NCBI GenBank assembly: GCA_038087875.1
Contig: JAXLNO010003381.1
Coordinates: 1 to 64,000, forward strand
Reading direction: 5' to 3'
Source of the DNA: Malacoraja senta
Taxonomy: Eukaryota
Length of the DNA stretch: 64,000 nucleotides
Of the stretch, positions 21,827-64,000 are shown in pieces. A model generated the notes under the pieces. It searched no databases and was not told where the DNA came from. It saw only the letters and a list, made by a program, of their open reading frames with translations. Each line of letters opens with the position of its first letter. Positions within the stretch are counted from its first letter, which is position 1. A program made the translations under genes and the position numbers.

Positions 21827-22006
21827 CTAAGACCGGAACACCAGAGCAGAATATTCCACCGATTCTGAAGAATGGATCTTGACGTCTTCATTTTGCTCTT
21901 TTAGATCCTTAAGATTGGAATAAATCGCAGGACTTGCTTCGGTCTGAGCTGACGACTGAATGGTCACGGTGGAATATGCAATCGTATCTTCAGTTTCACC
22001 TTCAGA
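21827..22006 (-). CDS. Gene A terminal ITIM exon (SEGETEDTIAYSTV...SPAIYSNL...ESVEYSALVFRS*)
   Basis: Acceptor ctctttttattccag|TCT; 60 codons to TAG. IAYSTV and VEYSAL are canonical ITIMs; AIYSNL lies between them. Confidence 0.88.
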   Translation of the reverse strand, partial: SEGETEDTIAYSTVTIQSSAQTEASPAIYSNLKDLKEQNEDVKIHSSESVEYSALVFRS

Positions 22007-39211: not shown

Positions 39212-39367
39212 TTAATTATTATCAGTGAGAATTGTTGCGTACACAATTTCTGCGGCACCTTGCCTCTTGGCTTGTCCTTGTGTGTTCATATCCTGAAGGT
39301 TCATGTAAGTATTCTCCGTGCTAGCTGGAGAACGGGTTGTCACGGTGGTATAAATGACAGGGGTTTC
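39212..39367 (-). CDS. Gene B exon 8, ITIM tail ([51 protein letters not shown])
   Basis: Phase-0 acceptor ctccaag|GAA; 52 codons to TAA. Contains VIYTTV (canonical ITIM), TYMNL and IVYATI (ITIM-like). Confidence 0.85.
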   Translation of the reverse strand, partial: ETPVIYTTVTTRSPASTENTYMNLQDMNTQGQAKRQGAAEIVYATILTDNN

Positions 39368-42300
39368 CTTGGAGTCAAGTGAGAAACATAATTACTTAAA
39401 GATAGTGTCAGAAGGTAGACAAAAATGCTGGAGAAACTCAGCGGCTGAGGTAGCATCTATGGAGCGAAGGAGTAGGTGACGTTCGTGTCGAGACCCTTCT
39501 TCAGACTGATGTCAGGGGAGTGGGCGGTACAGAGATAAAATGTAGTCGGAGACAGTAAGACTGGTGGGGGAACTGGGAAGGGGGAAGGGATGGAGAGAGA
39601 GGGAAAGCAAGGGCTGCTTTGACATTTCCAACACGAAACGTCACCTATTTCCTTCAGTCCATAGATGCTGCCTCACCCACTGAGTTTCTCCAGCATTTTT
39701 GTCTACCTTCGATTTTTCCAGCATCTGCAGCTTTCTCAAATGTAGTGTCAGCAGTGTTTNNNNNNNNNNNNNNNNNNNNNNNNNNNNNNNNNNNNNNNNN
39801 NNNNNNNNNNNNNNNNNNNNNNNNNNNNNNNNNNNNNNNNNNNNNNNNNNNNNNNNNNNNNNNNNNNNNNNNNNNNNNNNNNNNNNNNNNNNNNNNNNNN
39901 NNNNNNNNNNNNNNNNNNNNNNNNNNNNNNNNNNNNNNNNNNNNNNNNNNNNNNNNNNNNNNNNNNNNNNNNNNNNNNNNNNNNNNNNNNNNNNNNNNNN
40001 NNNNNNNNNNNNNNNNNNNNNNNNNNNNNNNNNNNNNNNNNNNNNNNNNNNNNNNNNNNNNNNNNNNNNNNNNNNNNNNNNNNNNNNNNNNNNNNNNNNN
40101 NNNNNNNNNNNNNNNNNNNNNNNNNNNNNNNNNNNNNNNNNNNNNNNNNNNNNNNNNNNNNNNNNAACCAATGCCCCCAAGACTAATTAGTTTGGACCTT
40201 ATTTGAGCTTTTTGTGTTTAATAGGTGAAATAAGAGCGCGGCCAGGGTGGCAGAGGTGAAATGAGAGCGCGGCCAGGGTGATGTGGGTCTCAGATGATGC
40301 TGGCTGCCTTTTTGAGGACAGCAAACACAAAATGCTGGAGTAACCAGCGGGTCATGCAACATCTCTGGAGAAAAGGAATAGGTGGCATTTTGGGTCGAGA
40401 CCCTTCTTCAGACCTAAACATAATTACTTAGTTTAGTTTAGTTTAGAGATGCTGAATGGAAACAGGCCCCTTGATCCATCAAGTCCACGCTGACCATCGA
40501 TCACCCATTAACAGTTGTTCCATGTTGTCCCACTTTTGCATCCTACACACTGGGGGCAATTTACAGAAGCCAATTAACCTACAAACCTGCACATCATTGG
40601 AATGTGGGAGTGAACCGGATCACCCGGAGAAAACCCGGGCGGTCACAGGGAGAACGCACGAACACTGCACAGACAACATCCGAGGTCAGGATCGAACTCG
40701 GGTCTCTGGCGCTGTGAGGCAGTAACTCTACCGCTGCGCCACTGTGCTGCCCACTGACAACAGGAGTGAACTCAGTAGAGACCATTAATGGCAACAAAGG
40801 AAGTTAAAGGATGGTGGCACAGCTGGTAGATTCTACTGCCTCACAGCGACCATCGATCACCTGTTCCACCTTAGATCTATGTTATCCCACTTTCTCATCC
40901 ACTCCCTACCCACTGGGAGAAATTTATGGAGGGCTATTCACTTACAAATCCGCCCGTCTTTGGGATGTGGGAGGAAACCGGAGCATCCAGACGAAACCCA
41001 GGTGGTCACAGGAAGAAACCTGCAAACTCCACACAGACAGCACCCATGTTCAGAATGTAACCCAGATGTTGTGCTTTGAGTTTGTGCCTGGCCTCACCAA
41101 GGCAGTGGAGAAGGCCAAGGATGGGCACTCGATCATTGAGGTGCCATGTTAAGTGATCGATATGTCATGTGATGTGCAACCCTTCAGGGGTGATATCCAG
41201 TAAGGTTGTTTTATTCCCTGGGGCTACAACATGCTGCGGCATTGCCTTACCTTGAAACTTCCTGCTGGATTTATCTGACTTATAATTCTCTGTCCATTTG
41301 AGCCTGAAAAATATAATGATAATTAAATCTTATATGGACTTAATTGAAGTCAAACACGCAAAGGATAATGTTGCATTTTATCCATTGAGGTCATACTTGA
41401 TTCCCTTTCATGAAAACTTAGTTTAGAAATACAATATGTAAATAGGCCCTTCGGCCCACCAACCACTGATCACCCGTTCACATTAGTTCTCCCAGAGACA
41501 CACTTTTCACCCAGAGAGTTGTGAATCTGTGGAATCTTCACCCAGAGAGTTGTGAATCTGTGGAATTCTCTGCCACCGCGAGCAGTGGGGCAATTTATAG
41601 AGGCCAATTAACCTACTAACCGGCACGTCTTTGGGATGGGTCATACAGTGTGAAAACAGGCCCTTCGGCCCAACTTGGCCACGCCGCCCAACATGCCCCC
41701 CATCTACATGAGTCCCACCTGCCTGCATTTGGCCCCATATCCTTCTAAACCTGTCCTATCCATGTACTTGTCCCAATGTGGGATGCGGAAGGAAACCGGA
41801 GCACCTGGAGGAAACCCATGCGGTCAATAGGGAGAACATGCAAACTCCACGGCAGGCAACACCCGAGGTCAGTATTGAACTTTGGACTCTGATGCTGTGA
41901 GGTAGCAGCTCTACCAGTTGCGCCACTGCACTACCCCTTTATAAAAATTACAACGACTTGATGGAAATTACTGCATCAGTAGGTGTGAAGTAGGATATTG
42001 TATTTATGTAGCATTTTATGAAAGCTTCAGGAAGTTGCATTGGATTATGAAATACTTGCTTCATGACACAGTCTACTGTAGAACAATGTTAAATCTCATG
42101 GGAAACCTCATTATGACCTGGCAGGTAACTTATTTACCATTTCTTGGATATGGTAAAGTTTAGTTTAGTTTTGAGATACAGCGTGGAAACAGGCCTTTCG
42201 GCCCACCGAGTCCGCACCGACCAGCGATCACCGCACACTAACGCTATCCTACATTAGGGCCAATTTTTACAAGGGAAATAGAAAATAAGTGCAGGAGTAG

Positions 42301-45300
42301 GCCATTTGCCCTTTGAGCCAGCACTGCCATTCAATATGATCATGGCTGATCATCCATAATCAGTATCCCGCTCTGGGCTTTTCTCCCCATATTCCTTGAA
42401 TCCCTTAGCCCTAAGAGCTAAATCGAACTTTCTCTTGAAAACATCCAGTGAATTGGCCTCCACTGCCTTCTGTGGCAATATTCCCACAGGCTCACAACTC
42501 TCTGGGTGTTAAAGGTTTTCCTCATCTCAGTCCTAAATGGCCTACCCCTTATTCTTAAACTGCGACCCCTGGTCCTGGACTCCCCCAACATCCTGAACAT
42601 TTTTCCTGCATCTTACTTGTCCAATCCTCTAAGAATTTTATATGTTTCTATAAGATATCCTCTCATCCTTCTAAATTCCAGTGAATACAAGCCCAGTCGA
42701 CACATTCTATCATCATATGTCAGTCCCATCATCCTGGGAATTAACCTGGTGAACCTACGCTGCACTCCCTCAATAGCAATAATGTCCTTCCTCAAATAGG
42801 AGACCAAAATTGCACACAATACTCCAGGAGTGGTCTCACAAGGGCCCTGCAACAACTGCAGTAGGACTTCCTTGCTCCCAAACTCAAATCCTCTCGCAAT
42901 AAAGGCCAACATGCCATTGGCTTTCTTCACTGCCTGCTGTACCAGCATGCTTACTTTCAGTGACTGATGAACAAGCACACCCAGGTCTTGTTGCACCTCC
43001 CCTTCTCCTAATCTGACACCATTCAGATAATAATCTGTCTTCCTGTTCTTGCCACCAAAGTGGATAACCTCACATTTATCCACATTATACTCTATCTGTC
43101 ATGCTTCTGCCCACTCACCCAACCTATCCAAGTCACCCTGCAGCCTCATAGCATCCTCCTTGCTGCTCACACAACCATCCAACTTTGTGTCATCCGCAAA
43201 CTTAGAGATGTCACATTTAATTCCCTCGTCTAAATCGTAAATATATATTGTATATAACTGGGGTCCCAGCACCGAGCCTGGCGGCACCCCACTAGTCATG
43301 CCTGCCAATCTGAAAAGGACCCATTAATTCCTACTCTTTGCTTCCTGTGTGCTCTAATTTTGCACACTAATCTCTTGTGTGGGACCTTGTCAAAGGCTTT
43401 TTGAAAGTCCAGATACACCACATCCACTGGTTCTCCCTTATCCATTCTACTTGTTACATCCTCAAAAAATTCCAAAAGATTAGTAATGCAATGATTTCCT
43501 CTTCATAAATCCATGCTGACTTTGACCAATCTTGTCACTGCTTTCCAAATGCGCTGCTATAACATCTTTCATTATCAATTCCAGCATCTTCCCCACTACC
43601 GATGTAAGGCTAACTGGACTATAATTCCCCGTTTTCTCTATCCTTCGTTTCGTAAAAAGTGGAATTACATTGGCTACCCTGCAGTTCACAGGAACTGATC
43701 CAAGTGGAGAGAACATTGGAAAATTATCACCAATGTATCCACGATTTCTCGGGCCACCTCCTTGCGTACTCAGGGATGCAGACCATCAGGCCCTGGGGAT
43801 TTATATGTCCCAACAGTTTACCTAACACCATGTAAGGACTCCATCCCCCACTCCCAATTCCTCCGTCTACGCCGCATCTGCTCCCAGGATTGAGGCGTTC
43901 CACACCAGGGCATCTGAATGTCCTCATTCTTCAGGGAACGGGGGTTCCCCTCCTCCACCATAGATGAGGCTCGCACCAGGGTCTCTGCCATACCCCGCAA
44001 CACTGCTCTCTCTCCCCATCCCCCCACTCACAACAAGGGCAGAGTTTCCCTAGTCCTCACCTTTCACCCCACCAGCCGTCACATACAACATGTGATCCTC
44101 CGTCAGTTTCGCCACCTCCAACGTGACCCCACCACTCGCCACATCTTCCCATCTCCCCCCATGTCTGCCTTCCGCAAAGACCGCTCCCTCTGTAACTCCC
44201 TTGTCAATTCTTCCCTTCCCTCCCATACCTCTCCCTCCCCTGGTACTTTCCCTTGCAACCGCAAGAGACGCAACACTTGTCCCTTCACCTCCCTCCTCGA
44301 CTCCATTCAAGGACCCAAGCAGTCGTTCCAGGTGCGACAGAGGTTCACCTGCATCTCCTCCAACCTCATCTATTGCATCCGCTGCTCTAGATGCCAGCTG
44401 ATCTACATCGGTGAGACCAAGCGGAGGCTTGGCGATCGTTTCGCCGAACACCTCCGGTCGGTCCGCAATAACCAACTTGACCTCCCGGTGGCTCAGCACT
44501 TCAACTCCCCCTCCCATTCCGTATCTGACCTCTCTGTCCTGGGTCTCCTCCATGGCCACAGCGAGCAACACCGTAAATTGGAGGAAATGCACCTCATATT
44601 CCGCTTGGGCAGTCTACATCCTGGGGGCTTGAACATTGAATTCTCCCAATTCTGCTAGCCCTTGCTGTCCCCTCCCCCTCATCAGCCCTCTGGTTGTCTC
44701 CTCCCCCCCCCCCCAGCCCTCAGGCTCCTCCTCTGCCTTTTTCCTATTTTCCTTTCTTCTCCCCACACCCTATCAGTCTGAAGAAGGGTTTCGGCCCGAA
44801 ACGTTGCCTATTTCCTTCGCTCCATAGATGCTGCTACACCCGCTGAGTTTCTCCAGCATTTTTGTGTACCTACCATTTTCTGACTAATGTGGACTCCCTT
44901 CATTTCTTCCCTCCCACTAGATCCTCGGTCCCTAGTATTTCCAGGAGATTGTTTGTATCTTCCTTAGTGAAGACAAAACAAAGTACCTGTTTAACTGTTC
45001 TGTCATTCCCTTGTTTCCCATTATAAATCCACCTGTCTCTGACTGTAAGGGACCTACATTCGTCTTCATTAATCTTTTCCTTTTTACATACCTAAAGAAA
45101 CTTTTACAGTCAGTTTTTATATTCCCCGCAAGCTTTCTTTCATGCTCTCCCCCCCCCCCCCTTTGTCCCCCTCTGTTCTAAATTTCTCCCAGTCCTCTGG
45201 TTTGCCACTTCTTCTGGCCAATTTGTATGCCTCTTCCTTAGATTTAACACTATCCTTGACTTCCCCGTCAGCCACGGTTGAGCCGCCTTCCCAGTTTTAT

Positions 45301-48300
45301 TTATTTGCCAGACGGGGATGAACAATTTCTGTGTTCATCCTTGCGGTCTTTAAATCTTTGCCATTGCATCTCCACTGTCAAGTATAGTTTGCCAGTCTAT
45401 CCTAGCCAATTCAGTCTGAAGAAGGGTTTCGGCCCGAAACGTTGCCTATTTCCTTCCAGTGTTGTATGTCTCTATGACTTCATGATTCAGCAAAGTTGTC
45501 ACCAGTCATCTCTCCTGCCTTCCTCCTGCAGATCTTACATCCACAGCTCCTGGACATTTCCAATGGTTCTACTTCAAAACAGCTTTACAATTTCCGGATA
45601 ATTTCACTGCATGGAGATTCAGAGGTTTCACGTGTCATCGCTAAGCTAAATAACAGGACGTCAGTGTCTGAACCTGTTGGGAAATATGTTTGGCTCCTTC
45701 TGCATCTGAAAGATCTCAATCGTCTCCTGGCTTACTGTGGCCATCACTACCTCTGTACCATTTGCAGATGAAAACATTCTTGTTCAATCTGGATAAGACT
45801 GACACACTTCTGCATATTATTGCAGCTTCCAACCAGATGGTTTTCACAGAACCATCAGTATGGAAGCAGGCCCTTTGGCCCTTTGAGCTCATGCTGGCCC
45901 ATCAAGCATCCATTTCCATTCATCTCCACAATCCCATTTTTTTTCGCCCCTTCTTCCTATCAATTCACCACAGATTTGACCACTTTCATCACACGGATCA
46001 AACCGACAGAGGAAGTGGTAAAGGCAAGTCCAAATCCATCGTTTAAAAGATATTTGGAGAGATACATGGAGAACAAAGCTTTAAGAGTGATGTGGGACAA
46101 GCACAGGTAAGTGGGACTAGCGTAGGGAAGCACCTTGGGCGTCAGTAAGGACGAGTTGGGCTAAAGGGCCTGTCTCTCTGGTGTAAACCCATGCGCTCAC
46201 AGGGAGAACGTATAAACTCTATACAGACAGCACTCATAGTCAGGATCGAGCCCGGGTTTCTGGCGTTGTAAGTCAGCAACTCTTCTGCTTTGCCACTGTG
46301 CCGCCCTGAAATGTCACCTGTCCATGTTCTCCAGAGATGCTGCCTGACCCGCTGAGTTACACCAGCACTTGGTGTCTTTCCCTGCTGTTATACGGTAGGT
46401 GAATGGTCTGTGTTTGTGAAAAGCACCTCAGAGAGAAGTGCCAAATCTTTGTTAATCAGCAAGAGTGCCCCTTGATATTTACATACATTCAACGGAACTT
46501 ACCAGTTTTCTTTTTCTGCCTCATTTTTACACATAGGATAATGGCAGCGATGAACAGAAGAAAGACAATTGTCAAGGCAATCGGTAGAACAACTTGCCAT
46601 GAAAATGTACCTGCCTCCCTGCAAAATACAAGAAAAAACAATGACGAGCTCATGGTAATAGGACTGATTCCCTCCCCAGTAACGAACCATGCGTTTCGAT
46701 CCGGAAAGTAAAAATGTGGAAATATACTTGAATGCAGTGCAGGTTAAATTCTATAATATTATGAATAATTCTATTGGTATTTAAGGAACTATAAAGTAGT
46801 TTAGAGTTTAGAGATATGACATGGGAACAGGCCCTTTGGCCCATTGTGTCCATGCCGACCATTTAGGGTTGGCACGGTGACGCAGTGGCAGGGTTGCTCC
46901 CTCACAGCGCAGGAGACCCGGGTTCGATCCTGACTACCGGTGCTGTCTGTACAGAGTTTGTACGTTCTCCCTGTGATCGCAAGAGTTTTTTCCAGGTTCT
47001 CCGGTTTCCTCCCACATTCCAAAGACGTGCGGGTTTGTAGGCTAATTGGCTTCTGTAAATTGTCCGTAATGTGTAGAACAGAACTGGTGTATGGGGTGAT
47101 CGCTGCTCAGAGCGGACTCGGCGGGCCAAAGGGCCCATTTTCACGCTGTATATTTAAACTGAGCAGAACTGAACTTCACTAATTTGTTCTCAGGTGAGGC
47201 TGAGTTGCCTCTTCGAGTTACTAACCATTTTGAACCAGGAGCCTCAGTGGAACTTGCTTCCTTGGTGGTTGGTGTACCTTGAGGCGTGGTGGTCAGAGTG
47301 TTTGTGGTGGTGATCATGTCTGGGCGGCGTGTTTGAGACCCTTGTGGAGATAAAGAAAATTAAGTTTTTAAATATTAAATGCCTGAAAGCACGTTCTGTG
47401 CCACTTTAGTGAGGTGTGGGAGATGCTCCAGTTGGGAACGCTCTTGCTCTGTGTGGGGAGATTCTTGGTTTGAATCCCACTGCACACATTTGGGCAAAGC
47501 TCCTTCTGAGGCCACGATAGATGGACCAAGCCTCTTGATCTAGACAGGAGGCTCACTCATTAAGATGCCGCAGGATGGTCACAAGCATTCAGAGACTTCT
47601 TTCATGCCCATCAGCGTCCCACAGGCTGTGTTGTCTGCCTGCTGCTGGAGTTAGGCACGTGTCTTCTACGTTGGAGAAGAACTTGGGAGCGGGAGGATCC
47701 ATGGACTATTTGCGTTAAGCGGACTGAATTGGAAATAATGCAATTTGGTTGGAGGTATCTAACTGAAACATTAACTCTCATTCTCTCTCCACAGAAGCTG
47801 CCGATCCCGTTGAGTATCTCATCTTGCACAGTTTGTGTGACTCAGTGTAAAGTCTATATCACTCAGCTCATGCGGGTTCTTCGTTCATAAGTTATAGAGG
47901 CAGATTTAGGCCATTGGCCCATTGAGCGCCATTCAATCATGGCTGATCTATCTCTCCCTCTCAACCCCATTCTCCTGCGTTCTCCCCATATTGCTTGACA
48001 CCCGTACTAATCAATAATCTGTCAATCTCCACCTTAAAAATACCCAATGACTTGGGCCTCATTGGAAACATGGTAAAAGCTTTTTCCTGTACCTCAACGG
48101 ACAATAGACAATAGGTACAGGAGTAGGCCATTCGGCCATTCGTGCCAGTACCGCCATTCAATGTGATCATGGCTGATCATCCCCAATCAGTACCCCGTTC
48201 CTGCCTACTCCCCATATCCCCTGACTCCGCTATCGTTAAGAGCCCTATCTAGCTCTCTCTCGAAAGTATCCATTATTATATTTGTCACCTCAGTACAGGT

Positions 48301-51300
48301 GACAACAATAAACTCAGCTCATGGCTCACTAATGTTTGTGAGACACAAGGAATTGCAGGTGCTGGAATCTTGAGCAAAACAAAAAGTGCTGGAGTAACTC
48401 AGCAGGTCAGGCAGCATCTGTGGAAGGAATGAACTGACGATGTATAGGGTTGGGATCCTTCTTCAGATGTTGTGTGTGTGGTGGGTGTAACAGTGACGGG
48501 CAGGGGGAGAGGGTGAGGGGGCGCCCCCCCCCTGCCCCAGTGAGGGGCACCAGAGGAGAGGTTCTGGTCCCGGAGAGATCGTCTTTGGGGAAATGAGCCG
48601 CCAGCAGCAGAACCGCCGGTCCCCATTGATGAGCTCACCCCCCTCCCCCACACACTGCTCCTGGGACAGTGAGATCGTGGTGTGGCCCCATGCAGCGGGT
48701 CCCCCCTACCCCCCTCACCTCCCCCCAACTCCACCCCCCCCACAGACCCCCGGGGATGTCACCATCAGGACCGAGGCCGGGAATTCCCAGGCTGGAATTT
48801 TCACATCTGGGAGAGTGAGGAGAGATCATCAACGTACCTTCAGAAACCTTCAATGAGATGGAGGTCTTTTCATTGAATTTCCATCGAACCTGTATGACAC
48901 ACCAGTACCGTCCTTCATCACTCTTCTCCAGGTTGTCGATGGTTACGGAAAGTTTCTGTTGTGTTTTGTTATCAGTCATCGATGTTCTCTCATGTTGTGG
49001 GTCATCAGTAGAAACCACGGTAGAAGATGTCAAGTAATATTCACCATTACTCCATAGCTTCCTGTTGTCTCTGTAATCCTGACCATACGGACATTCCACA
49101 GTGATCGACTGCCCTAACTCTCCCCTCGCCTCCTCGGGTCCAGTTATTTCCCTTGACCCTGTTGGCACATTAATGATGAAAGATCACTCACACTGCAGCA
49201 AAACAAGCAAAGTTTTAACAATAAAAAATATGTCATTTGTGCTGTTCAGACAGGTTCATGGTTTCGCATAGATCATGTGTAGCAAGGAACTGCAGGTGCT
49301 GGTTTACACCTAAAGATAGACAGAAAGTGCTGGAGTAACTCGGCGGGTCAGGCAGAATCTCTGGAGAAATCGGATGGGTGTCCTTTTCGGGTCGGGACCC
49401 TTCTTGATCTCCCGGTTGCCAACCCTGTCCACGTCCCTTCCCATTCCCACACTGACCTTTCTGTCCAGGGCCTCCTCCATTGCCAGAGTGAGGCCACATG
49501 CAAATTGCAGGAACCGCACCTCATATTAGCTCAGGTAGTTTACAACCCAACGGTTTGAACGTTGAATTCTCTAATTGTAAGTATCTTCTACTAACCTGCC
49601 CCCTCCCCTCCCCCCTTGACCCCTTTATCCACCCTGGTGGGTGAGGGGCCGGAGTAACTCAACGGGCCAGTAAATGAGGTATCTACCAACCCCACCCCCC
49701 TCACCCCGACCCCCGGGGATGAGTCAACGAGTCACCGTCAGGACCGAGGTCGGAATTCCCAGGCTGGAATTTTCACATCTGGGAGAGTGAGGAGAAATCG
49801 TCAACGTACCTTCAGAAACCTTCAATGAGATGGAGGTCAATTCAATGGGTGAATCCTTTTCCTTTTCTATCACACACCTGTAGTATCCTTCATCACTCTT
49901 CTCCAGGTTGTCGATGGTTACTGAAACTATCCGTTGTGTTTTGTTATCAGTCATCGATGTTTTCCCTTGTTGTGGGTGATCAGTAGAAACCACGGTCACA
50001 GGTGCTGGGTAATAATCACCTTTAAGCCATCGCTTCCTGTTGTCACTGTATTCCCGATCATACTGACATTCCAAAGTGACCGACTGCCCCAACACTCCCC
50101 TCACCTCCTCGGGTTCAGTTATTCCCCTTGACCCTGTGGGCACATTAATGATGAAATATCACTCACACTGCAGCAACACAAGCTGAGGTTTAACAATAAA
50201 AAACATGTAATTTGTACTTAAGAGTTTAAGAAGGAACTGCAGATGCTGGAAAATCGAAGGTAGACAAAAGTGCTGGAGAAACTCAGCGGGTGCAGCAGCA
50301 TCTATGGAGCGAAGGAAATAGGCAACGTTTCGGGCCGAAACCCTTCTTCAGACTGTACAGACGGGTTCATGGTTTCGCATAGATCATGTGTAGCAAGGAA
50401 CTGCAGGTGCTGGTTTATAACAAAGATAGACACAAAGAGCTGGAGTGCAACAGAATCTATGGAAAAGAAGAGACACAAAATGCTGGAGTAACTCAGCGGG
50501 ACAGGCAGCATCTCTGGAGAAACCAACGGGTGATGTTTCCTCACCCATTCCTTCTCTCCAGAGATGCTGCCCGTCCCGCTGAGTTACTCCAGCATTTTGT
50601 GTCTCTTCTTTTCCATAGATTCTGTTGCACTTTAATGCTTTTCCCGCTGGTGTTAATTCCCATTTCACCGGGATTGTTCCCCAAGTTCCAGTGAAAGCAG
50701 AACTGCTCCTGAATCTATCTGGTGCCCAGATCCTCCTTCCCTGTGGGCGTGGCTTGACCTGAGTGGTGGTCATGTGACAGGAAGCCAACCTGTCACTCAC
50801 TCTGACCCACCCTGTGTTCAACCTCACTACAACCCACTTCCCCATTGAACTAGTAGAAACAAGGAACTGCAGATGCTGGTTAATACACAAAAGGACACAA
50901 AGTGCTGGAGTAACTCCACGGGTCAGGAACCATCTCTGGAGAAAGTGAAACTCTCTGGGTGAAAAGGTTTTTCCTCATCTGAGTCCAAAATGGCCTACCA
51001 CTTATTCAGGTCTCAACCCTAAACGTCACCTATCCATGTTCTCCAGAGATGCTGCCTGACCTGCTGACTTACTGGTATGGTATGGTATATGGACACACTG
51101 ATTTGTTTTGTAGTAAATACCTACTATGTTCTGTGTGCTGAAGCAAAGCAAGAATTTCATTGTCCTATCAGGGACACATTACAATAAACTCACTTGAACT
51201 TGAACTTGAACTCCAGCACTTTGTGCTTTACTAAAGCTGAATAGGCAGCTGCCTGTGATGCCTCAGCAGGTCAGGCAACATCGCTGGAGAACATGGATAT

Positions 51301-54300
51301 GTAATGTTACAGGTAGATACATGGTGGCACAGTGGCACAGGGGTAGAGTTGCTGCCTTACAGTGCCAGAGACCCATGTTTGATCCTAACCTCGGGTGCTG
51401 TCTGTACGGAGTTTGTACGTTCTCCCCGTGACGTCGTGGGCTTTCTCCGGGTGCTCCAGTTTCCTCCCACACTCCAAAGATGTGCAGGTTTGTAGGTTAA
51501 CTGGCTTTCGTTAAAAATTGTAATTTGTTCTCGTGTGTAGGATAGTGTTAGTGTGCCGGGTGATCGCTGGATGGTGTGGAATTGGTGGGCCGAAGGGCCT
51601 GTTTCCGTACTGTGTCTCTAAAGTCATTAAAGGAAAGTCACCAAGTGATTCAGCTTGACCTGCAGTGTTACTCCAGCACTTTGTGTTTTACTAAAGCTGA
51701 ATAGCCAGTTGCCTGTGGTGACTCAGCAGGTCAGGCAGCATCTCTGGAGAACATGGATAGGTGACGTTTCAAGTCAAGACCATGAGATACTGCCTGACCT
51801 ACTGAGTTACGCCAGCACTTTGTGCCCCATTGAACTAAACTTCCCGGCCTGTGGAGGAAGCTGGATCTGCCACTGATGTTTCAAACTCCACGTCCACCTG
51901 GAATGAACATGAGGTGTCGTTTTCACACAAAGTCTGGTGGGTGTATGGATGAAGCTGCCAGAGGAGGTAGTTGAGGCAGGGACTATCCCATCATTTAAGA
52001 AACAGTTGGACAGGTACATGGATAGGACAGGTTTGAAGGGACATGTACCAAACGTAGACAGGTGGGACAGGTGTTGCTGAGACATGTTGGCCATTGTGGG
52101 TAAGTTGGGCCGAAGGGCCTGTTTCCACACTGTATCACTCTATGACTCAAACACATGTGAAACTCTGCAGATTCAGGAGCTGGGGTGGAGAGACATCATC
52201 AGATCAGTCCAGGTCCGCTCACAAATGCCTCGAAGGAGAACTCAGAGGCTAGGGAAAGCACGGTGTGAAGAACAGCAGAGTCTGTTGTTAGGCAGCTGGT
52301 TTTTCTCGGGAGAGATTACCACAACTTCTCCAAATGTTAAATTGGACAGTCACTCATTTGAGATGCCCGCCTGTTCCCAATGGCTGGCATTCACAGGTTT
52401 TTTCTTTGAATGTGCTGAGGTTTAGGTTCAACATTTCCCATTGCAGTGCGTGGAGGGAGTGACGTGTGTCTTTGATCGACACTAAATGCTGGAGTAACTC
52501 AGCGGGTCAGGAGGCATCTCTGGAGAGAAGGAATGGGGGCGCCCCCCCCCCCCGCCCCAGTGAGGGCACCAGAGGTTCTGGTCCAGGAGAGATCGTCTTT
52601 GGGGAAATGAGCCGCCAGCAGCAGAACCGCCGATGCCCATTGATGAGCTCCCCCCCCCCCCACACTGCTCCTGGGACAGTGAGCTTGTAGTGTGGCCCCT
52701 TGCAGCGGGTCCCCCCTACCCCCCCTCACCTCCCCCCAACCCCTCCCCCCCCCACGGACACCCGGGGATGAGGCACAGAATCACCATCAGGACCGAGGCC
52801 GGAATTCCCAGGCTGGAATTTTCACATCTGGGAGAGTGAGGAGAAATCGTCAACGTACCTTCAGAAACCTTCAATGAGATGGAGGTCAATTCAATGGGTG
52901 AATCCTTTTCCTTTTCTATCACACACCTGTAGTATCCTTCATCACTCTTCTCCAGGTTGTCGATGGTTACTGAAACTATCCGTTGTGTTTTGTTATCAGT
53001 CATCGATGTTTTCCCTTGTCGTGGGTGATCAGTAGAAACCACGGTCACAGGTGTTGGGTAATAACCACCTTTAAGCCATCGCTTCCTGTTGTCACTGTAT
53101 TCCCGATCATACTGACATTCCAAAGTGACCGACTGCCCCAACACTCCCCTCACCTCCTCGGGTTCAGTTATTCCCCTTGACCCTGTGGGCACATTAATGA
53201 TGAAATATCACTCACACTGCAGCAACACAAGCTGAGGTTTAACAATAAAAAACATGTAATTTGTACTTAAGAGTTTAAGAAGGAACTGCAGATGCTGGAA
53301 AATCGAAGGTAGACGAAAGTGCTGGAGAAACTCAGCGGGTGCAGCAGCATCTATGGAGCGAAGGAAATAGGCAACGTTTCGGGCCGAAACCCTTCTTCAG
53401 ACTGTACAGACAGGTTCATGGTTTCGCATAGATCATGTGTAGCAAGGATCTGCAGGTGCTGGTTTATAACAAAGATAGACACAAAGAGCTGGAGTAACTC
53501 AGCGGGACAGGCAGCATCTCTGGAGAAACCAACGGGTGATGTTTCCTCACCCATTCCTTCTCTCCAGAGATGCTGCCCGTCCCGCTGAGTTACTCCAGCA
53601 TTTTGTGTCTCTTCTTTTCCATAGATTCTGTTGCACTTAATGCTTTTCCCGCTGGTGTTAATTCCCATTTCACCGGGATTGTTCCCCAAGTTCCAGTGAA
53701 AGTAGAACTGCTCCTGAATCTACCTGGCGCCCAGATCCTCCTTCCCTGTGGGCGTGGCTTGACCTGAGTGGTGGTCATGTGACAGGAAGCCAACCTGTCA
53801 CTCAATCTGACCCACCCTGTGTTCAACCTCGCTACAACCCACTTCCCCATTGAACTAGTAGAAACAAGGAACTGCAGATGCTGGTTAATACACGGAAGGA
53901 CACAAAGTGCTGGAGTAACTCAACGGGTCAGGAACTATCTCTGGAGAAAGAGGAACTCTCTGGGTGAAAAGGTTTTTCCTCATCTAAATGGCCTACCGCA
54001 TATTCAGGTCTCAACCCTAAACGTCACCTATCCATGTTCTCCAGAGATGCTGCCTGACCTGCTGACATCAGCACTTTGTGCTTTACTAAAGCTGAATAGC
54101 CTGTGATGGCTTAGCGGGTCAGGCAACATCGCTGGAGAACATGGATAGGTAATGTTACGGGTAGAGACATGGTGGCACAGTGGCACAGGGGTAGAATTGC
54201 TGCCTTACAGCGCCAGAGACCCATGTTTGATCCTGACCTCGGGTGCTGTCTGTACGAATTCTGTACGTTCTCCCCGTGACAGCGTGGGCTTTCTCCAGTT

Positions 54301-56396
54301 TCCTCCCACACTCCAAAGACGTGTAGGTTTGTAGGTTGAATGGCTTTCGTTAAAATTGTAAATTTGTTCCTCGTGTGTAGGATAGTGTTACTGTGCCGGG
54401 AGATCGCTGGATGGCGTGGACTTTGTGGGCCAAAGGGCCTGTTTCCGTGCTGTATATCTAAAATCACTAGAGGAAAGTCACCAGGAGATGCAGCTTGACC
54501 TGCAGTGTTACTCCAGCACTTTGTGTTTTACTAAAGCTGAATAGCCAGTTGCCTGTGGTGACTCAGCAGGTCAGGCAGCATATCTGGAGAACATGGAGAG
54601 GTGACGTTTCAAGTCAAGACCATGAGATACTGCCTGACCCACTGAGTTGCGCCAGCACTTTGTGCCCCATTGAACTAAACTTCCCGGCCTGAGGTGGAAG
54701 CTGGATCTGCCACTGATGTTTCAAACTCCACGTCCACCTGGAATAATCCTGAGGTGTCTTTTTCACACAAAGTCTGGTCGGTGTATGGATGAAGCTGCCA
54801 GAGGAAATAGTTGAGGCAAGGCTATCCCATCATTTAAGAAACAGTTGGACAGGTACATGGATAGGACAGGTTTGAAGGGACATGGACCAAACGTGGACAG
54901 GTGGGACTAGTGTTGCTGAGACATGTTGGCCGGTGTGGGTAAGTTGGCCCGAAGGGCCTGTTTCCACACTGTATCACTCTATGACTCTAACACATGTGAA
55001 ACTCTGCAGCTTCAGGAGCTGGGGTGGAGACACATCATCAGATCAGTCCAGGTCCGCTCACAAGCCACAAGACAAATGCCTTGAAGGAGAACTCAGAGGC
55101 TGGGGAAAGCACGGTGTGAAGAACAGCTCGAGCAGCAGAGTGTTTTGTAAGGCAGCTGTTTTTTCCCAGAAGGGAGTGATTACCACAACTTCTCGAAATG
55201 CTAAATTGGACAGTCTCTCTGGTGCTTCCTCATTTGAGATGCCCGCCTGTTCCCATTGGCTGGTTTTATCTTTGAATGTGCTAAGTTTTAGGTTCAACAT
55301 TTCCCATTGCAGTGCGTGGAGGGAGTGCCGTGTGTCTTTGATAGACACTAAATGCTGGAGTAACTCAGCGGGTGAGGCGGCATCTCTGGAGAGAAGCAAT
55401 GGGTGACGTTTCGGGTCGAGACCCTTCTTCAGACCGAGTGTCGGGGGGCGGACGTATGCAAGGGGTAAAGCGTGAAAACGCAGATCAAAGCAGATGGTGT
55501 TAAGGAAATGTAGATAGCAGAGCCGGAGAGCAGGAGGAATCACAGAGGGGAACAGCGGGGGAGGGTGTTGCAGAATTCTCGTTGGGGATTGGAGGAGAAC
55601 TTCTGTCCCAGGCTAACTGAACCACACCAAAGGCCCGCATTTACATCTAGCGAAAGGTCAGCGTGTGGCACTCTGGTTACCGAGTCAGAGAGTCGTTGGT
55701 TCAATTCCCACTCCCGAAGCTCGAGGACTGAGGGAGTGCGGTACTGAGGGAACTCGCCACTGCTGGAGGTGGTGTCACTTTGCCGAGGCATTTAGCTGAT
55801 CTGCTGTCTGCTCTCTCAAGTCACTGAGAAAGTTCACCTGTAGATAGCATGCACCAGAATAGTGGAGCGAACTATCTGTTCTGGGGCCAAGAGTTACCCC
55901 TACACCCATGATCAACAGGGCCAGCTGCGGACTTTATTTCTGAGGCTGCGGCCTCTGGTCCTACACTCTCCCACTAGTGGAAACATCCTCACCCCATCCA
56001 CTCTATCCAGGCCTTCATTATTCGGTATTAAACATTAAGCTTCACTATTCGGTAAGTTTCAATGAGGTCCACAAGGCCAGGCAATCTCTAGAAAGTTATC
56101 TCCACAGGGAGCTAGCTGGGTGCGATTTGGCTGCACACAACACGACAACCGCTGATGGAAGTCTCTACAGGAACTAACGAGTGTTGAGCAATTTATCATC
56201 AGCTCCCCACATAGTACAGAGAGGTCTGTGGTTACAAATAATTCAAGACGCTGGTAAATAATTCTGAAGAACAGAGCATTTTGTAAAACAACGATTTACC
56301 TGGTGTAAGACCAACAGCGACCAGAACCAGCAGAGCGACTGTTCCCCTGGGTCTGGGCCGTTTCTGGTGGGTGAATTCTCCCTGTCCCATCGCCAT
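39212..56396 (-). CDS. Gene B model: CD300/pIgR-like (MDIR-like) inhibitory Ig-superfamily receptor, 3 V domains, 501 aa. join(complement 56300-56396, 52859-53182, 49810-50133, 48838-49158, 47226-47340, 46503-46618, 41251-41303, 39212-39367)
   Basis: All 7 introns are GT..AG, with phases 1,1,1,1,2,1,0 consistent; total 1506 nt = 501 aa + stop. Contains a signal peptide, 3 V-set domains, a Thr-rich stalk, an uncharged TM and three Tyr motifs (VIYTTV, NTYMNL, IVYATI). Family call is from sequence motifs, not a database search. Confidence 0.85.
39760..40165. other. Assembly gap (406 N) in the last intron of gene B
   Basis: Run of N. Confidence 0.99.
40430..40752 (-). mobile_element. V-SINE (HE1-like)
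   Basis: Reverse-complement copy. Confidence 0.85.
41251..41303 (-). CDS. Gene B exon 7, cytoplasmic ([18 protein letters not shown])
   Basis: Acceptor tatatttttcag|G and donor CAAG|gtaagg; 53 nt, phase 1 to 0, open. Confidence 0.75.
43832..44871 (+). mobile_element. Second 5'-truncated Penelope-like element (ORF 43918-44658), inserted into a CR1 copy
   Basis: Near-identical to 490-1482. CR1 sequence resumes on both sides; possible 5-bp duplication accat at 43827-43831 and 44872-44876. Confidence 0.88.
44778..44805 (+). ncRNA. Hammerhead-like motif in PLE pLTR
   Basis: Identical to the 1390-1417 motif. Confidence 0.7.
45416..45443 (+). ncRNA. Hammerhead-like motif, short solo pLTR fragment
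   Basis: CTGAAGAAGGGTTTCGGCCCGAAACGTT. Confidence 0.65.
46503..46618 (-). CDS. Gene B exon 6, transmembrane ([39 protein letters not shown])
   Basis: Acceptor ttttttcttgtattttgcag|G and donor ACTG|gtaagt; 116 nt, phase 2 to 1. Uncharged hydrophobic span followed by a basic stop-transfer run. Confidence 0.9.
46866..47160 (+). mobile_element. V-SINE (HE1-like)
   Basis: Same structure. Confidence 0.85.
47226..47340 (-). CDS. Gene B exon 5, Thr/Pro-rich stalk ([37 protein letters not shown])
   Basis: Acceptor ttctttatctccacaag|G and donor AATG|gttagt; 115 nt, phase 1 to 2; mucin-like composition. Confidence 0.8.
48838..49158 (-). CDS. Gene B exon 4, Ig V-set domain Vc ([25 protein letters not shown]...[27 protein letters not shown])
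   Basis: Acceptor gccaacag|GG and donor GAAG|gtacg; 321 nt, phase 1-1; canonical V-set motifs. Confidence 0.9.
49810..50133 (-). CDS. Gene B exon 3, Ig V-set domain Vb
   Basis: Same splice sites and length as Va; 321/324 nt identical to it. Confidence 0.9.
50324..50351 (-). ncRNA. Hammerhead-like motif, sense to gene B intron 2
   Basis: aacgtttcgggccgaaacccttcttcag on the plus strand is an intact motif on the minus strand. Confidence 0.65.
51322..51622 (+). mobile_element. V-SINE (HE1-like), duplicated at 54168-54462
   Basis: Same structure. Confidence 0.85.
52859..53182 (-). CDS. Gene B exon 2, Ig V-set domain Va ([25 protein letters not shown]...[28 protein letters not shown])
   Basis: Acceptor cccacag|GG and donor GAAG|gtacg; 324 nt, phase 1-1. 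Has the B-strand Cys, C-strand Trp and D-x-G-x-Y-x-C motif. Confidence 0.9.
53373..53400 (-). ncRNA. Hammerhead-like motif, sense to gene B intron 1
   Basis: Identical to 50324-50351; duplicated with the V-exon unit. Confidence 0.65.
55405..55432 (-). ncRNA. Hammerhead-like motif, sense to gene B intron 1, GUC site
   Basis: Reverse complement CUGAAGAAGGGU[CUCG]ACCCGAAACGUC; stem II U-A replaces the U-G of the other subfamily. Confidence 0.65.
55660..55915 (+). mobile_element. Diverged DeuSINE (SacSINE1/AmnSINE-like) relic
   Basis: tRNA-like B-box ggttcaattcc followed by gagggagtgcggtactg..ggaggtggtgtcacttt..ctgctctctcaagt, resembling the Deu domain as recalled. Confidence 0.5.
56300..56396 (-). 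CDS. Gene B exon 1, signal peptide [32 protein letters not shown](G)
   Basis: ATG at 56396; basic n-region then hydrophobic h-region; phase-1 donor CCAG|gtaaat. The paralogous copy at 63557 differs by 4 synonymous and 2 non-synonymous changes. Confidence 0.8.
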
Positions 56397-58465
56397 GTCT
56401 CGGCTGCGTTGGATCGGTTTGGACCCTGCACTGCGTTTGAGTTGTCCTCTTCCTCATTCACAACAGAAGTCAAACAGTCAATTTCCGTTTACTCAGGATA
56501 CGACTTTGCAGTGGTTCGAGACTAACTTGGTGACTCACTTGCCACCTCCCCCAGCCTCCTCACCACGGACAATGCACCTATCAGGACTGCGCTGCAACGC
56601 TCTCTAGTTGCCTGAATTGGAGCATCTCCTCCAAGCTCTGCTTCATCCTGGTGACATTTGCCCACTTGACTGGTGCTCTGTCCACCACTGCAAACATTCC
56701 CTTGCCCACCCCCTCAACCCCCTCCCCTAAATGCGGGCACACTGGGTCTGAATTTCTATGGGATTAGGAGGCAGAGATCAGCCGTGTTTGAATGGCGGAG
56801 TAGACTCGATGGGCCGAATGGGCAAATTCTACCCCTGGAACGTGTGAACTTGTGATATGTTTATCCACCTCAAAATGCGCGTCACTAATTTGTCCAGCCT
56901 TCCTCAGCTTCTCATGTGTTGAAACGTTACCCAGGAGAAATAAGACAACGCCAAACGTGATCAGGTAAGTCCACTCACGTCACCAGATAAACACCAGATA
57001 GATTCTTAATTAGTACATAGAGGTCAGAGATTATGGAGAGAAGGCAGGAGAATGGGGTTGGGAGGGAGTGATAGATCAGCCATGATTGAATGGTGGAGTA
57101 GATTTGATGGGCCGAATGGCCTAATTCTACTCTCATCACAACAACCTTATGACAAAAATTCAGCATCTTTTATTACATTGGATTACTTTAATCATTATTC
57201 AGTGTGCCGGGTTTTACACAACAATTCATTTGGTAATAAAGTTAAAAGTTCACATTCTGGAGAGCCAGCTTTGAGTTCTAGTCTATGTACTGCTGTCTTT
57301 TGGGTGAATGTCAGGATGTACAGACGTGTCTTCAAACATAGTTGCAGAATTCGGCCATTTGCTCCATCGAGTCTACTTCGCCATTCAATCATGGATGATC
57401 TATCTTTCCCCCTCCATCCCATTCTCCTGCCTCCTCCCCTCAACCTTTGACACCCTGAGTAAACCTGTCAATCTCCAATTTGAAAATATCCATTGATTTG
57501 GCCTCCACAGCCGTCTGTGGCAATGAATTCCACAGATTCATCACCCTTTGGCTAAAGAAATTCCTCCTCGAGCGGTCAAGTTAGATTGGACATAAGTGGG
57601 GTGTGGTGATGCTGTAGGGTCAAGGTGATGAGATCTGTCCATCTCCAACTGGTGAACACCCTCTCTGGCCCTGAAAAGCTAAACGATGATTATTGGGCGT
57701 CATTCCATCAGAATAACAATATTGATATAACGATTACCCTCAATTTTTTAATCTTATTCTTCTACCGCGTGTCCACAGTTCAATACTTGTAATCATCTAA
57801 CTGTTTTTATGTCCCCATTGCTCAATGGTACTTTATTGTCTCGTGTACATGGGTACAGTGAAATTTCTTTTGCATAGAATTCAGTAAAAAGCTTACTTGA
57901 TATAAGCACAGCTGAAGCTAAGGATAAGAGTGTATTAATAGCAGATTATATGATACAGTACACAACAGTTGCCACTATTTTGGCAGTATTTTATATTCTT
58001 AAACACCAAATTGGTAAAAAAGCAGAGTCTTATTTTGGGTTTAAAGGCCCGCTGTCGTGGGGACGGCACTGGGTGGGAGTTGCAGGTGTTCGGCCTGGCC
58101 TGGCGATGTTGTAGGTGCCTCCACCGCCGCTCCGTGCCGCTGCAGGATGTGTCCGATCCGCCCGCTCGTCCCCGACCTCTGTGGGGCCTCCAGCGGCACC
58201 CGATCCACCGACTTCTGCAGGGCCTCCAGCAGCCCACTCGCACTCCGCCCACACCTCGACCCACCAACGCACACTTTTCCCTCGCCTCCCACGGCAGTCT
58301 CCATGCGAGGTGAGGCCCCACCCAGGCAGATCACCGGCGCTGTTCCTCTCCTCCCTCCACCGCTGCCGACCCCATCTCCAAGGTCGCGGCTGGTTTTTTC
58401 CTTGAATAACAATGAAAACACAGTTTATAATCTCTACCATCAAATTTTACCCGAGGAAACGACCC

Positions 58466-58735
58466 AGGCGGCACAGTGGCGCAGCGGTAGAGTTGCTGCC
58501 TTACAGCGCCAGAGACCCGGGTTTGATCATGACCACGGGTGCTGTCTGTAGGGAGTTTGTATGTTCTACCTGTGACAGTGTGGGTTTTCTCCGGGTGCTC
58601 CGGTTTCTTACCACAATCCAAAGACGTGTAGTTTTGTAGGTTAATTGGCCTCTGTATAATTGTAAATTGTCCCTCGTGTGTACGATAGTGTGAGTGTACG
58701 GGGTGATCATTGGTCGGCGCGGACTTGGTTGGATG
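58466..58735 (+). mobile_element. V-SINE (HE1-like), mirrored at 62385-62648 (minus)
   Basis: Same structure; part of the inverted duplication. Confidence 0.85.
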
Positions 58736-58744
58736 TAGGGTCTA

Positions 58745-60186
58745 CAGTGCCCTCCATAATGTTTGGGACAAAGACCCATAATTTATTTATTTGCCTCTGT
58801 ACTCCACAATTTGAAATTTGTAATAGAAAAAAAAAATCACATGTGGTTAAAGTGCACATTGTCAAATATTAATACAGGCCATTTTTATACATTTTGGTTT
58901 CACCATGTAAAAATTACAGCAGTGTTTATACATCGTTCCCCCATTTCAGGGCAGCACAATGTTTGGGATACAGCAATGTCATGTAAATGAAAGTGGTTAT
59001 GTTTCGTATTTTGTTGCATATCCTTTGCATGCAATGACTGCTTGAAGTATGCGATTCATGGACATCATGGTGTCTTCTCTGGTGATGCTCTGCCAGGCCT
59101 GTATTGCAGCCATCTTTAGCTTATGCTTTTTTGGGGGGCTAGACCCCCTCAGTTTTCTCTTCAGCATATAAACAGCATGCTTAATCGGCATTTAGAATGA
59201 CTTGGCCACAAAAGAATTGACCAGTTTTTAGGTTTGAAAAATTCCTTTGTTGCTTTTGCAATATGTTTGGAATCATTGTCTTCCTGTAGAATGAACTGCC
59301 GGCCTATGGGTTTTGAGGCATTTGTTTGAACTTGAGCAGATAGGATTTGTCTATACACTTCAGAATTCATTATGCTACCACCATCAGCAGTTGTATCAAC
59401 AATGAAGATAAGTGAGTCAGTACCTTCAGCAGCCATACATGCCCAGGCCATAACACCCCCACCACCGTGTTTCACAGATGAGGAGGTATGCTTTGGATCT
59501 TGGGCAATTCCTTCTGTTCTCCATACTTTGCTCTTGCCATTACTCTGATATAAGTTCATCTTCGTCTCATCTGTCCACAAGATCTTTTTGCATAACTGTG
59601 GATGCTCTTTTAGGTAGTTCTTGGCAAACTGTAACCCGACCATCCTATTTTTGTGGCTAACCAGTGGTTTGCATCTTGCAGTGTAGCCTCTGTATTTCTG
59701 TTCATGAAGGCTTCTGCGGACAGTGGTCATTGACAAATCCACACCTGACTCCTGAAGAGTGTTTCTTATCTGTCGACTGGTGTTTGGGGATTTTTCTTTA
59801 TTATAGAGAGAATTCTTCTGTTATCAGCTGTGGAGGTCTTCCTTGTCCTGCCAGTCCCTTTGCGATTAGTAAGCTCACCAGTGCTCTCTTTCTTCTTAAT
59901 GATATTCAAAACAGTTGATTTTGGCAAGCTTAACGTTTGGCTGATGTCTCTAACAGTTTTATTCTTGTTTCTCATTCTCATAATGGCTTCTTTGACTTTC
60001 ATTGGCACAACTTTGGTCCTCATGTTGATAAACAGCAATAAAAGTTTCCAAAGGTGATGGAAAGACTGGAGGAAAGACTAGGTGCTGAGAGCTTTCTTAT
60101 ACCTGCATTAAGGAGGCAATTAAACACACCTGAGCAATTACAAACACCTTTGAAGCCAGTGTCCCAAACATTATGGTGCCCTGAAA
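58745..60186 (-). mobile_element. Tc1-family DNA transposon, IR/DR type, frameshifted transposase (59161-59742, 59766-60038)
   Basis: TA followed by the CAGTGCCCTCCATAATGTTTGGGAC terminus; inner DRs near 58945 and 60161-60186. Paired-like HTH, GRPRK-like motif, WTDE, VMAW and QEDND (DD34E family). The other end lies in the gap. Confidence 0.9.
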
Positions 60187-60386
60187 NNNNNNNNNNNNNN
60201 NNNNNNNNNNNNNNNNNNNNNNNNNNNNNNNNNNNNNNNNNNNNNNNNNNNNNNNNNNNNNNNNNNNNNNNNNNNNNNNNNNNNNNNNNNNNNNNNNNNN
60301 NNNNNNNNNNNNNNNNNNNNNNNNNNNNNNNNNNNNNNNNNNNNNNNNNNNNNNNNNNNNNNNNNNNNNNNNNNNNNNNNNNNNNN
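60187..60386. other. Assembly gap (200 N) inside the spacer of the inverted duplication
   Basis: Run of N. Confidence 0.99.
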
Positions 60387-61672: not shown

Positions 61673-62379
61673 AGAAGAGAAGGAACTGCCCAAGATCCAA
61701 AGCATACCACCTCATCTGTGAAACACGGTGGTGGGGGTGTTATGGCCTGGGCATGTATGGCTACTGAAGGTACTGACTCACTTATCTTCATTGATGATAC
61801 AACTGCTGATGGTGGTAGCATAATGAATTCTGAAGTGTATAGACACATCCTATCTGCTCAAGTTCAAACAAATGCCTCAAAACTCATAGGCCGGCAGTTC
61901 ATTCTACAGCAAGACAATGATTCCAAACATATTGCAAAAGCAATTTTTCAAAGCTAAAAAATGGTAAATTCTTGAGTGGCCAAGTCATTCTGAACCCAAT
62001 TGAGCATGCCTTTTACATGCTGAAGAGAAAACTGAAGGGGACTCGCCCCCAAAACAAGCGTAAGCTAAAGATGGCTGCAACACAGGCCTGGCAGAGCATC
62101 ACCAAAGAAGACACCCAGCAACTGGTGATATCCATTAATCGCAGACTTCAAGCAGTGTTCCAAACATTATTGTGCCCTGAAATGGGGGGACTATGTATAA
62201 ACACTGCTGGAATTTCTACATGGTGAAACCAAAATGTATAAAAATGGCCTTTATTAATATTTGACAATGTGCACTTTAACCATGTGCTTTTTTTCTATTT
62301 CAAATCACAAATTGTGGAATACAGAGACAAATAAATAAATGATGGGTCTTTGTCCCAAACATTATGGAGGGTACTGTAG
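61673..62379 (+). mobile_element. Partial Tc1 copy (3' transposase fragment + TIR)
   Basis: KHGGGGVMAW..QQDNDSKH..LNPIEH; terminal TIR gtcccaaacattatggagggtactg-ta. Confidence 0.85.
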
Positions 62380-63556: not shown

Positions 63557-63653
63557 ATGGCGGTGGGACAGGGAGAATTCACCCACCAGAAAAGGCCCAG
63601 ATCCAGGGGAACAGTCGCTCTGTTGGTTCTTGTCGCTGTTGGTCTCACACCAG
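63557..63653 (+). CDS. Gene C exon 1, signal peptide [32 protein letters not shown](G); paralogue of gene B, rest of gene beyond the window
   Basis: 91/97 nt identical to the gene B leader in inverted orientation; intact ATG and CCAG|gtaaat donor. Confidence 0.75.
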
Positions 63654-64000
63654 GTAAATCGTTGTTTTACAAAATGCTCTGTCTTTAGAATTATTTACCA
63701 GCGCCTTGAATTATTTGTAACCACAGACCTCTCTGTACTGTGTGGGGAGCTGATGATCAATTGCTCAACACTCGTTAGTTCCTGTAGAGACTTCCATCAG
63801 CGGTTGTTGTCGTGTTGTGTGCAGCGAAATCGCACACAGTTAGCTCCCTGTGGAGAAGGGAGATAACTATCTAGAGCTTGCCTGGCCTTGTGGACCTCAT
63901 TGAAACTTACCGAATAGTGAAGTTTAATGTTTAATACCGAATAATGATGGCCTGGATAGAGTGGATGGGGTGAGGATGTTTCCACTAGTGGGAGAGTCTA

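Follow-up and report, generated by a model that had tools for sequence, protein, structure and literature searches.

A probable inhibitory receptor gene of the CD300/pIgR/TREM branch with three V-set exons and a private V-exon duplication in the skate Malacoraja senta

The subject of this analysis is a gene on the minus strand of a 64,000-nucleotide stretch of Malacoraja senta DNA (contig JAXLNO010003381.1, positions 1 to 64,000 of the forward strand), which is referred to below as the window. Between positions 39212 and 56396 the window most likely holds an intact gene of this rajid skate. Its product would be an inhibitory type I membrane receptor belonging to the CD300/pIgR/TREM branch within the Ig superfamily. 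The coding sequence was rebuilt from the window sequence and comprises 1506 nucleotides (nt), including the stop codon TAA, in eight minus-strand exons. An initial annotation of this DNA had proposed that eight exons join in phase into 501 amino acids, and the rebuilt model gives exactly 501 amino acids and a stop. The exon phases are 1-1-1-1-2-1-0 in order, and every internal boundary is canonical AG/GT.

Exon 1 (56396-56300, 97 nt, donor gtaaat, end phase 1) supplies the ATG and the signal peptide. Its n-region had been described as unusually long and basic, which was borne out: 18 residues, five of them basic, precede the h-region. The next three exons encode the V-set domains Va (exon 2, 53182-52859, 324 nt or 108 codons), Vb (exon 3, 50133-49810, 324 nt), which is a recent duplicate of Va, and Vc (exon 4, 49158-48838, 321 nt or 107 codons), which is the orthologue of the V2 exon of Amblyraja radiata. 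All three are of phase 1-1 with identical splice sites. They sit between one leader and one stalk and transmembrane exon pair, and no leader, stalk or transmembrane exon is interposed. A Thr/Pro/Ser-rich stalk is encoded by exon 5 (47340-47226, 115 nt, donor gttagt, phase 1 to 2), and exon 6 (46618-46503, 116 nt, phase 2 to 1) encodes an uncharged transmembrane segment followed by the stop-transfer sequence KMRQKKKTG. The cytoplasmic tail is split between exon 7, called cyt1 (41303-41251, 53 nt, phase 1 to 0), and exon 8, called cyt2 (39367-39212, 156 nt including TAA). Three tyrosine motifs lie in exon 8 on the minus strand: VIYTTV at 39358-39341, NTYMNL at 39313-39296 and IVYATI at 39247-39230. 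The order proposed initially, with Va, Vb and Vc followed by a stalk, an uncharged transmembrane segment and a tail with these three motifs, was thus recovered part by part in the rebuilt model.

The short exon 7 was selected among 510 in-phase AG...GT segments between the transmembrane exon and cyt2. It is the best splice-site candidate and the only one of the 510 that combines strong sites at both ends with a homologue in the orthologues. A cyt1 homologue lies between the transmembrane exon and cyt2 in A. radiata, Leucoraja erinacea and Rhinoraja longicauda. Two further candidates were rejected. A 50-nt exon candidate at 39730-39681, beside an assembly gap, was dropped, as it is absent from every orthologue. 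An alternative stalk donor (caa g/gtacac, phase 1) was also dropped, as it does not fit the phase of the transmembrane exon and A. radiata uses gttagt. A search within the gene, from 46503 to 39367, for a transmembrane exon of the activating type found none. Regarding the leader, conservation of the N-terminal sequence GEFTHQK(R/Q)P ahead of the signal h-region (window 56396-56343, minus strand) extends from skates to sharks. Directly ahead of the h-region, sharks have a Met (MELIALLIL) and skates have none. The N-terminal extension of the leader is either translated or a conserved 5' element.

The model was compared with orthologous loci in other skates, which are labeled L001 (R. longicauda), L002 (A. 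radiata) and L003 (L. erinacea) where coordinates are given. The L. erinacea protein XP_055510917.1 (RefSeq 'polymeric immunoglobulin receptor-like isoform X2', 514 amino acids) is 71% identical across model residues 1-501, and the alignment includes the stretch ...KMRQRKKTG/SNEQRIMSQQNPADSFK/ETPVIYTTV...NTYMNL... in the L. erinacea protein. Because this match to an independently annotated protein is of full length, chance cannot account for the eight-exon model. The genomic locus of XP_055510917.1 is compact (12.7 kb) and has the order leader, V, V, V, stalk, transmembrane, cyt1 and cyt2, with no extra leader, stalk or transmembrane exon among the V exons. In A. radiata the orthologue is XP_032898105.1 ('CMRF35-like molecule 3'), which has two V exons. 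Its locus is collinear with the window at about 90% nucleotide identity from upstream of the leader to the V exon of the next gene, with about 91% conservation in the promoter and leader region. Stalk donor (gttagt), transmembrane acceptor and transmembrane donor coincide between the A. radiata RefSeq model and the window gene, and all splice junctions agree with RefSeq models of other skates. Amino acid identity to A. radiata is 94% for the leader, 89% for the transmembrane exon and 96% for cyt2; for cyt2 it is 92% to L. erinacea. Over the aligned length, the model is 71-72% identical to XP_055510917.1 and XP_032898105.1.

Not every multi-V model in the databases could be used as support. The 614-amino acid 'four-V' protein XP_078276598.1 of Rhinoraja was dropped as a chimera across four tandem single-V genes over 64 kb; at the R. 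longicauda locus (L001) every V exon has its own leader, stalk and transmembrane exon. Isoform X1 of L. erinacea, XP_055510916.1 (622 amino acids, L003 10001-58419), starts at the leader of the neighboring gene and was dropped as a chimera as well. Several RefSeq multi-V 'pIgR-like' skate models string together exons of neighboring tandem genes.

An assembly gap, a run of N at 39760-40165, lies between exons 7 and 8 in intron 7. Its continuity was judged by collinearity with two gap-free loci, those of A. radiata XP_032898105.1 (L002) and L. erinacea XP_055510916/7 (L003). L002 19233-19737 aligns to window 41420-40925 and L002 19743-21303 aligns to window 39728-38190; in L. erinacea the alignment breaks between the gap flanks at L003 57890/57896. 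The flanks are therefore separated by 6 nt in both species and belong to a single uninterrupted intron, orthologous to intron 7, which ties the ITIM exon to the same gene as exon 7. The window carries about 1.2 kb of extra sequence between the flanks, including a dispersed repeat at 40752-40428, which places the gap within a repeat insertion specific to the window. In A. radiata and L. erinacea cyt1 and cyt2 are neighboring exons about 0.7 kb apart with no coding sequence between them. From these alignments, the gap should hide no exon, and since it is intronic, the reading frame across it is irrelevant. The preceding intron, between the transmembrane exon and cyt1 (46100-41420), is 5.2 kb long here compared with about 1.9 kb in A. 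radiata and is swollen by retroelement pieces. It contains reverse-transcriptase-like open reading frames at 42613-43716 and an open reading frame of 246 amino acids at 43918-44658 on the other strand.

The tail comprises 77 residues. VIYTTV and IVYATI fit the consensus (S/I/V/L)xYxx(I/V/L) of the immunoreceptor tyrosine-based inhibitory motif (ITIM); these two ITIMs are 37 residues apart with a YxN motif between them. The middle motif, NTYMNL, is not an ITIM because it has N at position -2, and it represents a YxN (Grb2-type) motif. All three tyrosines stand in conserved contexts in nine relatives from skates, sawfish, stingrays, electric ray and sharks, namely (V/I/T)xY(T/A/S)(T/S)(V/I), (T/S)YxN(L/F/V) and VxYxx(I/V). 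The transmembrane core is uncharged. The initial proposal of an inhibitory receptor is supported at the level of sequence by the two ITIMs and the YxN motif, by the uncharged transmembrane segment and by the retention of the tyrosines from skates to sharks. Judging from what is established for ITIMs, the receptor would most likely recruit SHP-1/2 or SHIP once its tyrosines are phosphorylated, and dampen signals coupled to the immunoreceptor tyrosine-based activation motif (ITAM). In such a scheme, ligand binding by the V domains would lead to phosphorylation of both ITIM tyrosines by Src-family kinases, and the tandem SH2 domains of SHP-1/SHP-2 (or SHIP) would dock on the phosphorylated ITIMs. 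The docked phosphatases would then damp ITAM-coupled activating receptors, including the charged-transmembrane paralogues encoded next door. The phosphorylated middle YxN motif could bind Grb2.

The XP_032898105.1 model of A. radiata ends differently. It joins cyt1 to an acceptor beyond the exon 8 stop (L002 20349) and reads the peptide AFAFRSHQEQCMVI up to a stop, so that all three tyrosine motifs are skipped. The same downstream acceptor is kept in the window (aatccag/ACATTTGCG, at about 39130 on the minus strand, 83 nt past the exon 8 stop). It could reflect either an ITIM-less isoform or an annotation slip.

The placement in the CD300/pIgR/TREM family, proposed initially, was supported both by sequence and by predicted fold. 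The Pfam V-set profile recognized Va, Vb and Vc with E values of 3.4e-15, 4e-15 and 2.9e-11, respectively. A HMMER search with Va against 1.84 billion representative proteins yielded 1464 relatives. The nearest were batoid proteins, named 'polymeric immunoglobulin receptor-like' or 'CMRF35-like molecule' by RefSeq, and the matches among solved structures also fell within the family. By sequence, the best of these were pIgR (E 2e-27, with domain D5 on top), teleost pIgR and CD300f/CLM-1 (E 7e-11 to 3e-13), followed by CD300a/c, TREM-1/2 and NKp44. An AlphaFold2 model of Va, built from a 55-row alignment, had a predicted local distance difference test score (pLDDT) of 89.6. When the predicted fold was compared with the PDB, CD300lf occupied ranks 1-5 with TM-scores of 0.86-0.89 at about 30% identity, and pIgR D1, IREM-1, TREM-1 and IRp60 were further close folds. 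The second disulfide ('WC...C', strands C/C'), a hallmark that CD300 domains share with pIgR, TREM and NKp44, is missing in Va, Vb and Vc. The corresponding sites read KRWLKG...PVTVV in Va and Vb and KLWSNG...STVV in Vc, with no Cys at either position. None of the other skate members examined has this disulfide either; WC...C is retained in relatives from stingrays and mantas, and Narcine has one of the two cysteines.

The number of V domains was traced to a tandem duplication on the minus strand (49686..55403). Unit A (55403-52736) and unit B (52537-49686) each consist of the distal intron and a type-1 V exon; the unit size is about 2.7-2.9 kb and the start-to-start spacing is 3.05 kb. Va and Vb are separated by 3 differences in 324 nt, each of them non-synonymous. 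In a global alignment of about 2.9 kb, the two units show 112 mismatches and 260 gap columns, and the longest exact run is 249 nt. Identity is mosaic: it is 92-95% in the distal intron, rises to 98.5-99.5% at 53780-52825, a tract that spans the V exon and about 600 nt ahead of it, and falls to 88% over the final 89 nt. A. radiata has the unit only once. A maximum-likelihood tree of 15 V exons pairs Va with Vb (100/100 support) within a 'type-1' clade that also contains A. radiata V1 and L. erinacea V1/V2. Vc, which has 90% nucleotide identity to A. radiata V2, groups with that exon and with V2 of the L. erinacea gene g1 (98/97). Taken together, the tree and the single-copy unit of A. radiata point to an ancestral gene with two V exons, to which one was added privately in the lineage of the window. 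The suggestion that the domain arrangement may be lineage-specific therefore held only in part: the Va/Vb duplication is private, but a three-V form also exists in L. erinacea, where it arose by a separate duplication. Beside this, the type-1 V exon region at 53358-52544 has about 80% nucleotide identity to L002 13759-14627, and the intron just upstream (53710-53402) has 95%. An exon more diverged than its own intron fits diversifying selection or conversion from paralogues.

A third V exon that is so similar to its neighbor might be an artefact. The real locus or its main mRNA could have two V domains, with Va and Vb being either a false tandem duplication, in which haplotypes were placed side by side, or two copies of which one is routinely skipped. 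This account is in line with the A. radiata orthologue, which has two V exons and one copy of the unit, and with the mere three differences between Va and Vb. The V exons share phase 1-1 and identical splice sites, so the reading frame would be kept whether an mRNA contains one, two or three V domains, and skipping would not disturb it. We nevertheless consider it unlikely. The mismatches and gap columns between the units, with no exact run beyond 249 nt, do not fit a false duplicate, and the mosaic of identities is what an older duplication would show after gene conversion across the exon. The junction of the units is free of assembly gaps. Furthermore, the L. erinacea inhibitory gene independently has three contiguous V exons. 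For the three-V gene, we infer expression and the inclusion of all three exons in one mRNA from the intact exons, their identical splice sites and the L. erinacea model.

Several points weigh against this reading of the gene. When RNA runs were searched with window 46400-53300 as the query, only 5-9% of its words were present, and these are most likely repeats. The Vc exon alone as the query was present in two runs only, both of unknown kind, and no candidates were found among short protein fragments, such as transcript contigs, matching the Vc exon. The A. radiata model without the ITIM-coding part means that ITIM-less isoforms may exist. Finally, the evidence from selection is limited in precision. 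Pairwise ratios of non-synonymous to synonymous substitution rates (dN/dS, Nei-Gojobori) against A. radiata and L. erinacea ranged from 1.1 to 3.3 in the V exons; the leader gave 0.24, cyt2 0.6 and the transmembrane exon 0.77. These values are only indicative because the substitution counts are small. Read in that way, the V exons appear to change faster at amino acid-altering than at silent sites.

It is quite improbable that the gene is a young pseudogene, unexpressed or in decay, within a receptor cluster of fast turnover. Retroelement insertions have enlarged the intron between the transmembrane exon and cyt1 (5.2 kb, compared with about 1.9 kb in A. radiata), which would suit such a copy, but all eight exons are open with canonical splice sites, dN/dS of tail and leader lies below 1 against the orthologues, and the conservation of the promoter and leader region relative to A. 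radiata (about 91%) also speaks against decay.

It is hardly credible that the gene is the polymeric immunoglobulin receptor of cartilaginous fish itself, moving polymeric immunoglobulin M across epithelia: its several tandem V domains, the top PDB sequence matches to pIgR with D5 highest and the automatic RefSeq name 'polymeric immunoglobulin receptor-like' are outweighed by a conserved ITIM-YxN-ITIM tail unlike the sorting and transcytosis tail of pIgR, by the location in a multigene paired-receptor cluster with charged-transmembrane twins, by V domains that have dN/dS above 1 and differ in number between close species, by the absence of the second disulfide typical of pIgR domains and by a 2014 survey that reported no pIgR homologue in sharks (PMC4016189).

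For the inhibitory receptor itself, a broader evolutionary interpretation is conceivable, which we put forward as tentative and rather doubtful. An arms race in the skate branch would combine recurrent independent duplications of V cassettes and dN/dS above 1 in the V domains with a fixed ITIM tail and the loss of the second disulfide, and would have produced a distinct multi-V, single-disulfide subfamily. In this gene, the private 2.7-2.9-kb unit may later have been homogenized by the conversion tract of about 0.95 kb. If this were true, the number of domains would be adjusted to give avidity for a ligand that changes fast and possibly comes from pathogens, and the downstream acceptor seen in the A. 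radiata model would offer the option of an ITIM-less isoform.

The surroundings of the gene agree with the initial description of an expanding chondrichthyan cluster, as paralogues are found in the window and tandem arrays in three other skates. In L. erinacea, XP_055510911.1 is a relative with the same leader and V domains and a charged transmembrane segment (...LRWVLFG...). It lies just upstream of the next gene, g1, and about 43 kb upstream of the inhibitory gene. Remnants of the last exon of an activating paralogue of the XP_055510911.1 type are present in the window as mirrored copies at 58420-58334 (minus strand) and 62704-62778 (plus strand). Within this cluster, in which activating and inhibitory paralogues are paired, the window gene is of the inhibitory type.

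Further features were noted on both sides of the gene. A large inverted duplication (55962-59520 and 61673-64000, 92-97% identity) has a second assembly gap, 60187-60386, at its centre. It contains a second, inverted leader exon at 63557-63652 (plus strand), the protein sequence of which is identical to the A. radiata leader, and the mirrored copies of the activating-type last exon named above also lie in it. The inverted duplication may be genuine, as a head-to-head pair, or it may be a fold-back artefact of the second gap. The next gene downstream (21857-29721, minus strand) is a two-V paralogue. Its V exons (29721-29500 and 28045-27821) keep the WC...C disulfide, its transmembrane segment lies at 26283-26197, and its tail exon (21991-21857) encodes IAYSTV and AIYSNL. 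The first V exon of this paralogue is the orthologue of the gene that follows the A. radiata orthologue (L002 30172-30378).

Automatic annotations of related skates already contain the family, its inhibitory tail and even a three-V form. What this analysis adds is a gene model for this species, a resolved assembly gap, and a date and an anatomy for the private duplication of a V exon. The model is verified at its junctions for a species whose copy was absent among the proteins returned by the homologue searches, the assembly gap was shown not to affect the gene, and the V-exon duplication was dated after the split from A. radiata. The comparison also flags chimeric RefSeq multi-V 'pIgR-like' skate models. 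The gene is a further example of paired innate receptors in cartilaginous fish whose ectodomains vary quickly in number and sequence and whose ITIM-YxN-ITIM tail is kept. Overall, the result is a good annotation of modest evolutionary interest; it concerns an ordinary member of an annotated receptor family and opens no long-standing question.

Among known systems, the clearnose skate (Raja eglanteria) has MDIRs, a skate multigene family that, according to a secondary description (PMC3031540), was reported in 2006 to resemble CD300, TREM and pIgR. The full-length and representative-set homologue searches returned no proteins named MDIR. According to the work of Cannon et al. from 2006, MDIRs reportedly have variable numbers of Ig domains and occur in ITIM or charged-transmembrane forms. 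Their domains are said to be of the I- or C2-set, whereas the window domains score best as V-set, a comparison made by description. pIgR shares with the window gene the tandem V-set domains of the same subtype, and it gave the highest PDB sequence scores for the window V domains. However, pIgR, which binds polymeric Ig containing J chain and gives rise to a secretory component, is a single-copy gene with a second disulfide and a long sorting and transcytosis tail without ITIM, whereas the window gene belongs to a multigene paired family and encodes an ITIM tail and one disulfide per domain. CD300a and CD300f (IRp60, IREM-1/CLM-1) share the type I topology, the mucin-like stalk, the uncharged transmembrane segment and the charged-transmembrane activating paralogues in the cluster; the activating CD300 members have short tails. 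The tail of CD300f carries several ITIMs and a Grb2-type YxN motif, as does the tail of the window protein. CD300 receptors have one V domain with two disulfides, whereas the window protein has three V domains with the canonical disulfide only. Most similar are the L. erinacea and A. radiata orthologues XP_055510917.1 and XP_032898105.1, which share with the window gene the leader, the type of V domain, the stalk, the uncharged transmembrane segment, cyt1, the ITIM exon and the junctions. The A. radiata gene has two V exons in place of three, and its model skips the ITIM-coding sequence. In L. erinacea the three V exons derive from a separate duplication with a spacing of about 1.14 kb, whereas the third V exon of the window gene derives from its private unit of 2.7-2.9 kb.

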